Shown here: positions 24,155-27,100 of the stretch, piece after piece
How the letters are laid out: each line of letters starts with the position of its first letter
How positions within the stretch are numbered: position 1 is the first letter of the stretch
Assembly (NCBI GenBank): GCA_001655205.1
Contig: LPNZ01008880.1
Span: 12,775 to 76,774 of the forward strand
Direction: 5' to 3'
Source: Lenisia limosa
Lineage: Eukaryota; Protista; Breviatea
DNA length: 64,000 nt
The notes under the pieces: model-generated
What the model saw: only the letters and a program-made list of their open reading frames with translations
What the model was told of the DNA's origin: nothing
The model's database searches: none
Position numbers and translations under genes: made by a program

Positions 24155-27100
24155 ATGGAGATCGGAGATCGTCACTTTATCGAGTTCGGTTGTCCTGATC
24201 AGCCCTAAGTACATCTTCATTAGTAATAAGAAGGTATGTTGTGTATGCGTGTATATATTATATTGTATGTTTCGTTCGTTTCTCACCCCATTTAGATCTT
24301 TGAAGATGACTCAAGCCTCAGGAGTAGGTTAAAGACCCTTTATATTTAAATAATTGGTCATATATTATATTTTACGTCCTTTAAGGATCCTGAGGCGGCC
24401 AGAATGAATCGGCCTCCAAACTTTGACTTCCCTACTCCACCTACTCCCCCCACAAGGAAATGGCTTAACGCTAAGAAGTGGTACCAATGGCCCAATCCTA
24501 TTGGTATGTGGGATTCTCATCCTTCCGTGTCAACTTTTGATTTGCTAAGGGGCTTCTTCTTCTCCTCTCCTTCGTATTAGAAAGTCTAAACATAATAGCA
24601 GAAACTCCTGTGTTTTTTTTCATCTTATAGACAACCGCCTTGTTCGATTGATCTCCTTCTTTGTGTTTCTTTCGGCATTGACTATCTTAATCTTTGGTGT
24701 CATTGGAGACAATGATGAGGTGTGGTACCTTGTCCCCTTTCTCTTCTTTGACTTTTTTGTCCGCACCATTTTTGGCCCCGTTCCTTTCAGGTAAGAGCTG
24801 TTTGTTGGATTTCTATTTCTTCGGGCATTTACATTTACCTGATCAGTCCACTTGGTGTTCTTTCTACCATTATTTTGAAGATCTTCCGCATCAAGACCAT
24901 CATGGTTCCTTCTCCTGCAAAAAGGTTTGTTCTTTGAGAAGGTAATACCTTAGGTTCTCTGCCTTCCTGGGTATTGTGCTCAACACTGTCCTCTTCAACC
25001 TAAGGTTTACCCTTGACTCTGAGCTCCAAAGAGTGAGCCTTGAGATATTTATTACCCCCCCCCCCCCCNNNNNNNNNNNNNNNNNNNNNNNNNNNNNNNN
25101 NNNNNNNNNNNNNNNNNNNNNNNNNNNNNNNNNNNNNNNNNNNNNNNNNNNNNNNNNNNNCCGTTTTGGGCTTCTGTGTTGGCTGCTGGATTTTCGGAGC
25201 TTTCTTCAGATGGCGGTATGCAGTCGGTTTCACTGGCGCTGACATTGCAGTGACGCACGGGAGCTGAAAGGCTGCAAAAAGAAGCTGATCCCTCCGCCCG
25301 GTCCTGCAAAGAAGGGTGGAAACCTGGTTCGTGATAGGTTTGCGCTTGGGTTAAAAAGTAATCAAGACTGTATTAGACCTAGAGTTCATAATAATACCAA
25401 CCCTTAGAAAAGAGCCCGAATTCAACCATGGCTTTGACTACGATCTGATTGTCATCGGCGGTGGCTCTGGCGGCATGGCTGCTTCCAAGGAGGCGGCTAG
25501 ACTCGGTACGTCCTTCATCGTTGATCATATGACCATATTTCACTCCTCACCTCTCAGGGCGCAAGGTGGTCGTACTGGACTATGTAACTCCCTCTCTTCA
25601 AGGCAAGGTTGGTTTTTTCTTTTACAACATTTCACCCGTTAGACTTGGGGTCTTGGTGGTACGTGTGTGAACGTTGGATGCATCCCTAAAAAGCTGTATC
25701 ACCAGGCTGCTCAACTTGGAATCCAGGTAATTCAGCAATAGCCCTCTTCTGATCTTTAGATTCACGAGCGTGCTTCCTACGGATGGGTTGGCGATGTCCG
25801 TGATGCAGTCAGGTCAACCAACAAGTTCTTTAAGAACACTGTAAGTACATCAACCCAGTATTCTTATATATCTCCAGGCAATTCAGCTTGGAGAAAAACA
25901 AGTCCCTATGTCTGAGAGCGAGAAGAGTGATTTGTTCAAAGAAGTGGAAGTAAGTAAATTCGTGGCATTTCGTTTAAATATTAGGTCTGTGGCTTAACCG
26001 ACGAGAATTCTGAAAATGGAGGAAAACGCTGCAAACCCACTCACCAATGGCCTGTACTCAAAAAAAACATCCTTCGTCACATTTCAAGCCTCAACCAAGG
26101 GTTTGGAAATTGTAAGTCCCTTACTTCGCAGCTATGTATCGTCCCTTCGCTCCCAAAAAGTCCAATACCTCAATGCCCTCGGCTCTTTTGTTGACAGTCA
26201 CACCATTCGCGCTGAATACGGAAATGGCAAGCACAGCATCATTTCTGGGAGACGCATTCTCGTTGTAAGGGCATTATGCCTCTTTTGTGACTTCTAGGCT
26301 GTTGGTGGCCGCCCAAGAATGCCCATTATCCCGGGTATTGAACACGCGATTTCCTCTGATGAGCTTTTCCATCTTGACGAATCCCCAAAGAAAACGTGAG
26401 TCTTTTCTCAAGTTTACGTTTCAGTCTTGTTGTTGGTGCGTCTTACATTGCTTTGGAATGCGCTGGATTCCTGACTGGATTAGTAGGCTTTTAGAGAGTT
26501 GACGTTGGCTGTTTTGAAGAACACTAATGAGCTAGGGATGCGATACTCATGTCATGGTTCGTTCTAAGGTTCTGAGAGAGTTCGACCAAGAGTATGTTTG
26601 GATTTCTTGTGTTTTTGTTTAGATGTCTTCTCATCGATACAGTGTTGCTGAGCGGGTTGAGAAGGACATGATTGAGGAAGGAATCAACTTTATCCCCAAG
26701 TCTGTCCCGACCAAAATCGAAAAAACTGATGGTAAGAATTGTACCACTATTCTTTTATAGTGAATTAGCTGGACTCAAGGTTTTTTACAAAAAATCCTCT
26801 GGTGACTCCGGTGAACAATCTGGTGAGAGTCCTATTTGCGGGTAGCATTGTTGACATTTCACAGAAGTTTTCGACACTGTTCTCTTTGCTATCGGTCGCA
26901 CACCTTGCACCAAATCACTTGGCCTTGCGTGGGTTCTTTGTTGTTGGGTTTATGGAACAGGCAAGTTGGAGTCAAGACTGCCCCCAATGGAAAAATCTAC
27001 TGCTACCACGAACGCACTACTGTTCCTCATATTTACGCAGTAAGCCCAAGGTAAACAGTTTCTTTGCTTAGAAGCTGAAACTGCTAATTTGCAGATGTAG

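Follow-up and report, generated by a model that had tools for sequence, protein, structure and literature searches.

We analyzed a stretch of 64,000 nucleotides (nt) of the Lenisia limosa contig LPNZ01008880.1 (positions 12,775 to 76,774 of the forward strand). We refer to this whole stretch as the window, and all coordinates are given within it. The window comes from a draft eukaryotic assembly with many runs of N and very short GT..AG introns. Between 24404 and 27875 on the plus strand we found approximately 26 short exons, and the reading frame was kept at every joint. The predicted product has approximately 750 residues and consists, in this order, of a proline-rich N-terminus, a hydrophobic DUF4395 domain (Pfam PF14340), a basic linker and a complete thioredoxin reductase (TrxR) of high relative molecular mass (high-Mr), which ends with Gly-Cys-TGA-Gly-TAA. 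The gene model was built from reading frames and from the joints present in public RNA contigs. For comparison we used a protein of Pygsuia biforma (P0002), a gap-free genomic contig of an environmental relative (L082, ENA assembly ERZ3820729) and a GC-rich genomic contig of a further relative (L083). The parts of the gene are as follows.

24306-24323, plus strand: possible upstream mini-exon (MTQASG) with donor GTAGGT and an in-phase splice to an acceptor at 24385; an uncertain reading of the sequence, without RNA contig cover
24404-24503, plus strand: exon 1, from the ATG through the proline-rich N-terminus to WPNPI, ending in phase 1; RNA contig joint 24502/24630
24631-24790, plus strand: exon 2, first and second transmembrane (TM) helices of DUF4395 (NRLVR.., DFFVR motif); PF14340 E 0.012 alone; covered by an RNA contig
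24847-24924, plus strand: exon 3, SPLG amphipathic helix to PAK(R); an RNA contig enters this exon
24925-24953, plus strand: intron 3, 29 nt; AKRFS.FLG is contiguous in L082, L083 and P0002
24954-25032, plus strand: exon 4, TM3, ending with DSELQR; donor GTGAGC at 25033, equivalent donor in L082 gtatgt; placed by alignment with P0002
25033-25160, plus strand: intron 4 and assembly gap; C-run 25056-25068, gap 25069-25160
25161-25215, plus strand: exon 5 as far as it is visible, with the last part of TM4 and CVGC (Cys codons 25175-25177 and 25184-25186); PF14340 E 0.043
25251-25337, plus strand: exon 6, basic linker, no Met; an in-frame stop lies just upstream
25408-27875, plus strand: exons 7-26 (twenty exons), complete high-Mr TrxR, with the GGGSGG motif for flavin adenine dinucleotide (FAD) in exon 7, CVNVGC at 25664-25681, and HPVCAEE
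25760-26098, plus strand: insertion in the FAD domain, three exons, approximately 55 residues (DVRDAVRS...GGKRCKPT); exons joined in an RNA contig; alignment gap against P0002
27861-27875, plus strand: C-terminus GGC TGC TGA GGT TAA, read as Gly-Cys-Sec-Gly (Sec, selenocysteine), with the TGA at 27867-27869
28020-28082, plus strand: hairpin resembling a selenocysteine insertion sequence (SECIS) in the 3' untranslated region (UTR), with a GUGA ... GA core and an apical loop that begins with CC; fold z-score 0.34

An earlier sequence-only reading of this stretch had quoted a number of motifs, and all of them were found on the plus strand: WPNPI|DNRLVR across exons 1 and 2, ..|SPLG across exons 2 and 3, PAKR|F..G across the 29-nt intron, and FCVGCW at 25172-25189. 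Of its two splice joints, AG|A at 25337/25408 was exact, whereas CG|T lies at 25215/25251 and not at 25218/25250. Introns of this gene are mostly 29-53 nt long (e.g. 24925-24953, 25216-25250, 26396-26424), with only two longer ones of 65 and 110 nt. Similarity to L082 extends 5' of the ATG at 24404 (DPEAAR and DAEVGR), and the equivalent exon of L082 has no ATG; the true N-terminus of the window protein is uncertain. The insertion in the FAD domain contains two Cys (EVCGL.., GKRCKPT); it is shorter in Pygsuia, partial in L082 and missing from solved TrxRs.

Identity of the two parts and continuity of the reading frame

The curated Pfam cut-off for PF14340 is 24.5 bits, and single exons of the gene scored below it (exon 2: 16.4 bits, E 0.012, profile positions 4-44; exon 5: 14.6 bits, E 0.043, profile positions 115-129 of 130). 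We built a custom hidden Markov model (HMM) solely from 120 bacterial proteins, all of which carry PF14340. The spliced N-terminus of the window protein matched this bacterial model with 82 bits (E 2e-27) over HMM positions 14-142, while 500 shuffled N-termini reached at most 5.4 bits. The orthologue P0002 scored above the Pfam cut-off, with 69-73 bits over profile positions 1-127 of 130. Residues invariant in the family were present in register in the window protein, namely in DFFVR (D-F..R), SPLG (S-P), AKRF (KRF), FLG (G), MES (E-S) and CVGC (C.GC), and C..GC is invariant across the DUF4395 family. By these profile comparisons the N-terminal part, approximately 170 residues long, was shown to be a genuine DUF4395 domain, in agreement with the earlier identification.

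The C-terminal part contains the FAD site, CVNVGC, the site for reduced nicotinamide adenine dinucleotide phosphate (NADPH), the His-Glu dyad and the C-terminal Gly-Cys-Sec-Gly. The corresponding part of P0002 had rat TrxR1 as its best solved match (521 bits), and a full-length match to chains of thioredoxin glutathione reductase (TGR) was obtained with 493 bits. Judged by its motifs, the C-terminal part is a complete Sec-type, dimer-type, animal-type high-Mr TrxR. The Sec TrxR named by the sequence-only reading was thus recovered, with CVNVGC, GCUG encoded with TGA and full-length colinearity with P0002. From the coding sequence we infer that Sec is inserted at the in-frame UGA.

P0002 was obtained with phmmer, with exon 2 as the query against 1.84 billion representatives. 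It is a protein of 724 residues (EukProt EP00033, record GCRY01000360.1.p1), labelled as a complete open reading frame (ORF), and besides PF14340 it carries Pyr_redox_2 (195 bits), Pyr_redox and Pyr_redox_dim (85 bits). Its name in the public database is a gene-caller ORF label and is functionally uninformative. The window model aligned with P0002 from end to end (749 columns, 47% identity). The alignment takes in the reductase as well as the N-terminal extension, the domain and the beginning of the linker, W(R/K)DAR. P0002 ends with ..KKSGC, which is equivalent to the position of the Sec codon in the window, as would be expected if the gene caller stops at the Sec UGA.

In L082 the exons were 66-80% identical to those of the window and followed the same order. 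The linker exon was conserved (CKAKLIPAPGPAKK; SDCKAKLIPAPGPAKK) with the phases seen in the window, and the splice phases at the joints of exons 2/3, 5/6 and 6/7 were equal in both. AKRFSAFLG is uninterrupted in one exon of L082, which supports the 29-nt intron at 24925-24953. On the contig L083 two thirds of the domain are present, counted from its N-terminus, and the intron after ..SIK/LQR is found there as in the window. Identity of exon 2 to proteins P0001, P0002 and P0003 was 52-69%. These alignments show the architecture to be conserved in three or more lineages, including a named breviate. Word-based protein searches aimed at further fusions and at unfused relatives of the eukaryotic domain returned P0002 alone, a metagenome scan with P0002 gave no matches, and none of the ESM Atlas clusters of at least 50 members joined DUF4395 with Pyr_redox. 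In one bacterial cluster of the ESM Atlas, with 72 members, Pyr_redox_2 is joined to a VTT/DedA membrane domain; by automatic annotation only, this is a further case of a flavoprotein disulfide reductase fused with a membrane domain.

The sequence-only reading had placed one exon within the assembly gap at 25069-25160. In L082, exon 4 ends with DSELQK|gtatgt and is followed by a run of 14 C, AG and exon 5, which starts with GPVIVLTIFSFLESVLGICVGC. The counterpart in the window is DSELQR|gtgagc at 25032/25033, and the C-run at 25056-25068 abuts the run of N. Further, one DNA-run contig continues to the left of 25161, 76 nt into the gap, and 30 nt of this extension read in frame as ..VLTLFAFMES before VLGFCVGCW. 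When five X were inserted at the gap, the DUF4395 part aligned to P0002 without gaps. The structure of L082, the reading of the DNA contig and the alignment with P0002 together indicate that the frame is continuous through the gap. As read from these sequences, the C-run is the pyrimidine tract of intron 4, and the gap conceals the acceptor of this intron and approximately 4-5 codons of exon 5. The earlier placement was only roughly right, since no complete exon is missing and the gap would hold just the 5' end of exon 5. The C homopolymer was probably the cause of the gap. L082 itself has runs of 10-14 C immediately 5' of acceptor AGs (6900-6912, 7535-7550). Homopolymer C tracts used as intron pyrimidine tracts may explain many small gaps in the assembly.

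The RNA data came from one polyA RNA run of the same study, in which two contigs lie on the gene. In a contig of 305 nt, exon 1 is spliced to exon 2 and exon 2 to the beginning of exon 3, in exact agreement with the model. The other, of 1828 nt, spans 25462-28103, removes 19 introns of 29-110 nt and covers the SECIS-like hairpin. During alignment of the RNA contig the 29-nt intron at 26396-26424 was scored as a deletion rather than as a joint. In exon 7 there is no in-frame Met before GGGSGG, and its sole Met lies just after this motif. The nearest upstream coding frame before the linker and TrxR exons is the one that bears CVGC. Since neither the TrxR exons nor the linker exon offer a usable start codon, the TrxR part cannot stand alone. 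At the level of the predicted coding sequence, we confirmed that the DUF4395 exons and the TrxR exons form one reading frame and one gene.

Membrane topology and genomic context of DUF4395

We prepared an AlphaFold2 model of the DUF4395 domain of the Pygsuia protein (P0002:45-205) from 122 aligned sequences; it is a model of that domain and not of the window protein. The predicted local distance difference test score was 87.8 and the predicted TM-score 0.80. The model contains TM helices at 12-36, 39-57, 87-109 and 113-133. In addition it has an amphipathic helix (65-77) and a final helix (137-160) with the CxxC in its first turn (residues 136 and 139 of P0002:45-205). The N-terminus of a helix is the classic position of a redox-active CxxC pair. 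In hydropathy and charge bias, the window protein fits the four TM helices of this model. Its Lys and Arg together number 6, 5 and 12 on the near side, compared with 0 and 2 in the far-side loops. As the chain crosses the membrane four times, its N-terminus lies on the same side as the CxxC and the reductase, and the charge bias identifies this near side as cytosolic. Conserved polar residues all lie on the side of the CxxC, and the far-side loops have only 2-5 residues, none of them conserved. The modelling showed DUF4395 as a predicted bundle of four TM helices with both termini in the cytosol and the CxGC at the interface of membrane and cytosol, after TM4. The earlier proposal that electrons are relayed across the membrane was weakened, as the CxxC, the conserved polar residues and the TrxR are all assigned to the cytosolic side. 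No second redox station is visible on the far side, which makes such a relay less likely.

A Foldseek search of the PDB with the domain model gave only matches with E >= 0.5 and nothing specific, and VIA-align against the PDB gave only generic four-helix bundles (Z <= 9.6). There were no matches among Swiss-Prot models in the fold search, or among PDB sequences with the DUF4395 profile. Fold matches in AlphaFold Database (AFDB) clusters and in the ESM Atlas were DUF4395 models only, with TM-scores of 0.7-0.76. Kinship to VKOR, DsbB, CcdA or DoxX was considered and dropped, since the fold searches gave only generic four-helix bundles.

In the AFDB fold clusters, the DUF4395 fold occurred within proteins automatically named as thioredoxin-domain (364 residues) or glutaredoxin-domain proteins (451, 1000 and 1028 residues) and within an unnamed protein of 868 residues. 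These eukaryotic proteins with thioredoxin (Trx) or glutaredoxin (Grx) names are known here by names and lengths only. The long ones have 580-680 residues C-terminal to the domain, room enough for a TrxR, and we treat this as a lead only. A solved TGR (7p0x) is likewise named automatically in UniProt as 'Glutaredoxin domain-containing protein'.

Further, we surveyed 80 loci of Bacteroidota and located the DUF4395 gene in 68 of them. The adjacent gene encoded a thioredoxin-fold AhpC-TSA/Redoxin protein in 19 of these 68 loci; in 16 of the 19 it was directly upstream, always on the strand of the DUF4395 gene. The motif CPNC was present in 13 of the 19 redoxins. In Ferruginibacter/Chitinophagales and Runella a protein of approximately 400 residues, whose N-terminus resembles a signal peptide and which ends with a TlpA-like redoxin domain (CPNC), is encoded directly 5' of DUF4395 (L018:4763-5968, L050:4728-5960). 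A DUF1684 neighbour was seen in 17 of the 68 loci. In a single case, a metagenome-assembled genome of Chitinophagales, a class-I disulfide reductase (Pyr_redox_2 and Pyr_redox_dim; L051:3878-5275, minus strand) lies approximately 700 nt from DUF4395, on the opposite strand. On the Methylobacterium aquaticum plasmid pMaqPC1 (L085, 4112-6922), DUF4395 is located between genes for cytochrome b and a class V aminotransferase, in a copper/heavy-metal resistance island.

Proposed electron path and its alternatives

The reading that we prefer, with modest confidence, is that this one gene encodes a membrane-integrated selenoprotein TrxR, whose Cys-Sec arm would reduce the CVGC of the tethered DUF4395 domain in a manner analogous to TGR. 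Electrons would pass from NADPH to FAD, to CVNVGC and on to the partner subunit's flexible Cys-Sec arm. From this arm they would reach, on the cytosolic side of the membrane, the CVGC of the tethered DUF4395 domain. Reduced DUF4395 could act on a substrate in or on the cytosolic leaflet, which might be a disulfide of a membrane protein or an oxidant of the lipid phase, for instance a quinone or a hydroperoxide. We infer the relay to CVGC from the cytosol-facing CxxC, the DUF4395 proteins with Trx and Grx names and the redoxin neighbours in Bacteroidota.

Several observations weigh against this reading. No SECIS was matched by Rfam in the 3' UTR at E <= 1; the SECIS-like hairpin at 28020-28082 lies in the transcribed 3' UTR, and its folding energy is not distinctive (z-score 0.34). 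The redoxin adjacency in the 68 Bacteroidota loci, a 5.4-fold enrichment relative to genes at least 3 positions off (Fisher p 1e-5), counts for a redox role of DUF4395, but the test overstates independence, since the redoxin loci are phylogenetically clustered (mostly Ferruginibacter/Chitinophagales and Runella). By eye, the CPNC redoxins mostly have hydrophobic, signal-peptide-like N-termini. If exported, they would be on the opposite side of the membrane from the CxxC, which the proposed mechanism does not explain. Other bacterial contexts of DUF4395 vary and include sterol desaturase/PhyH, aminotransferases, a MarR regulator with flavodoxin, and a metal-resistance island. The ATG in exon 5 (FAFMES) could in principle start a shorter isoform with the last helix only. 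Finally, exons 4-7 are not bridged by any RNA contig, and depth was 0 over 24957-25409.

These RNA data bear on the alternative that two neighbouring genes give separate DUF4395 and TrxR transcripts, and that modelling across the gap has artificially joined them into a single ORF. The RNA contigs stop at approximately 24893 and resume at 25462, and their depths differ (7.2 and 13.9), which speaks for two genes. Both contig ends nevertheless lie inside exons, and 25462 falls within codons of the FAD-binding motif, which indicates breaks of the assembly rather than ends of transcripts. A separate TrxR would have no start codon; moreover, Pygsuia has one predicted ORF, and in L082 the linker exon is conserved with identical phases. 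We consider two genes scarcely probable. Of the fusion proposed by the sequence-only reading, the in-phase single ORF stood and was found also in P. biforma and L082, while a single transcript was not seen directly in RNA of the organism. It is unlikely, in our estimate, that DUF4395 is an anchor only, which would tether a conventional TrxR for local reduction of thioredoxin while the CxGC serves an unrelated function of DUF4395 itself. The linker is tether-like, being long (approximately 35 residues) and basic, the TrxR part is complete and ordinary, and DUF4395 is a family of unassigned function, whose fold is not matched by solved or reviewed proteins. A single helix would be sufficient as an anchor, yet the whole domain and every invariant residue, including the CxGC, are kept in three eukaryotic lineages. 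The DUF4395 fold in AFDB proteins with automatic Trx and Grx names would, as far as names and lengths tell, point to a redox link.

The exported appearance of the TlpA-like CPNC redoxins, which are encoded directly upstream of DUF4395 in Bacteroidota on the same strand and resemble pairs of the CcdA/ResA type, would fit a transmembrane relay. DUF4395 would then pass reducing equivalents to lumenal or extracellular thiol proteins, similarly to CcdA/DsbD, with the TrxR as a built-in donor. We find this rather improbable, because the domain has a lone Cys pair at the cytosolic interface and short far-side loops of 2-5 residues without a conserved residue, and the fold searches gave no similarity to CcdA/DsbD, DsbB or VKOR. 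A role in handling thiophilic metals or metalloids seems very unlikely; in such a scheme, which follows the example of MerT/MerA, DUF4395 might take up selenite, tellurite, Hg(II) or the like in the membrane and transfer it to the Cys-Sec pair. In favour of this role, TrxR is homologous to MerA, whose C-terminal Cys pair is supplied by a Cys pair in the membrane, and one DUF4395 gene lies in the metal-resistance island of the Methylobacterium plasmid. Genes for class V aminotransferase and PALP recur near DUF4395 in Bacteroidota. This support is anecdotal, and metal genes were not seen in most contexts.

Beyond electron transfer to the tethered CVGC, which remains our preferred reading, we tentatively put forward a broader possibility. 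DUF4395 might represent a new class of membrane thiol-disulfide oxidoreductase, a physiological end-point of the thioredoxin system that is hard-wired to a Sec TrxR in breviate-like protists, and the members with Trx and Grx names and those linked to TlpA might belong to the same pathway. DUF4395 is a widespread family of bacteria and eukaryotes without a characterised or solved member, and the conserved fusion, as a Rosetta-stone clue, suggests for it a thiol-redox role that can be tested. If this broader possibility holds, the protein would be the first integral-membrane TrxR and a one-polypeptide disulfide reductase leading from NADPH to the membrane. The fusion also suggests that these protists, which are probably low-oxygen organisms, send reducing power derived from NADPH straight to a membrane site. 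The fused protein would also be a self-contained system for finding the substrate of DUF4395.

Comparison with known systems

To our knowledge, high-Mr thioredoxin reductases are regarded as soluble enzymes. We found no description of this architecture in the literature on the Pygsuia TrxR, on membrane-bound or membrane-anchored TrxRs, or on protist Sec TrxRs with transmembrane N-termini, and DUF4395 was met in the literature in passing mentions only. The window protein matches rat (1h6v) and human (3ean) TrxR1 in its CVNVGC, in its motifs for NADPH and FAD, in its HP...E dyad and in ending with GCUG. Mammalian TrxR1 differs in being soluble and without a membrane domain, and the FAD-domain insertion of approximately 55 residues belongs to the window protein.

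Stand-alone bacterial PF14340 proteins have the same domain and the invariant residues in common with the window protein, and the AlphaFold2 model superposes on them with TM-scores of 0.7-0.76. Unlike the window protein, they are unfused proteins of 140-180 residues, and many carry an additional N-terminal CP.D Cys. CcdA/DsbD, DsbB and VKOR are also helical membrane proteins, in which redox cysteines link cytosolic or quinone pools to thiol proteins, and DUF4395 of Bacteroidota is likewise paired with TlpA-like redoxins. However, no similarity of fold or sequence to them was detected, and the only Cys pair of DUF4395 is its cytosol-facing CxxC. CcdA/DsbD are recognized by two membrane cysteines on separate helices in an inverted repeat of at least 6 TM helices, whereas the window domain has 4 TM helices and one interfacial CxxC.

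The closest parallel that we drew is with TGR of Schistosoma mansoni (PDB 2x8c/3h4k), which also joins a Sec high-Mr TrxR with an N-terminal CxxC domain; in TGR the Cys-Sec arm reduces that domain. In the window protein the fused domain is a predicted four-helix integral-membrane DUF4395 and not a soluble glutaredoxin, and the linker is longer and basic. Pfam searches on the exons and on P0002 gave no Grx match at the N-terminus, and the likeness to TGR in its way of working is by analogy only. Reductase and acceptor are also found in one polypeptide in NTRC of plants and cyanobacteria, in the TrxR-Trx of Mycobacterium leprae and in AhpF, which combine low-Mr TrxRs with soluble domains of the thioredoxin fold. 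In summary, a TrxR fused to its acceptor is already known from TGR and NTRC, and what is new here is DUF4395 as the proposed acceptor, an integral-membrane domain.

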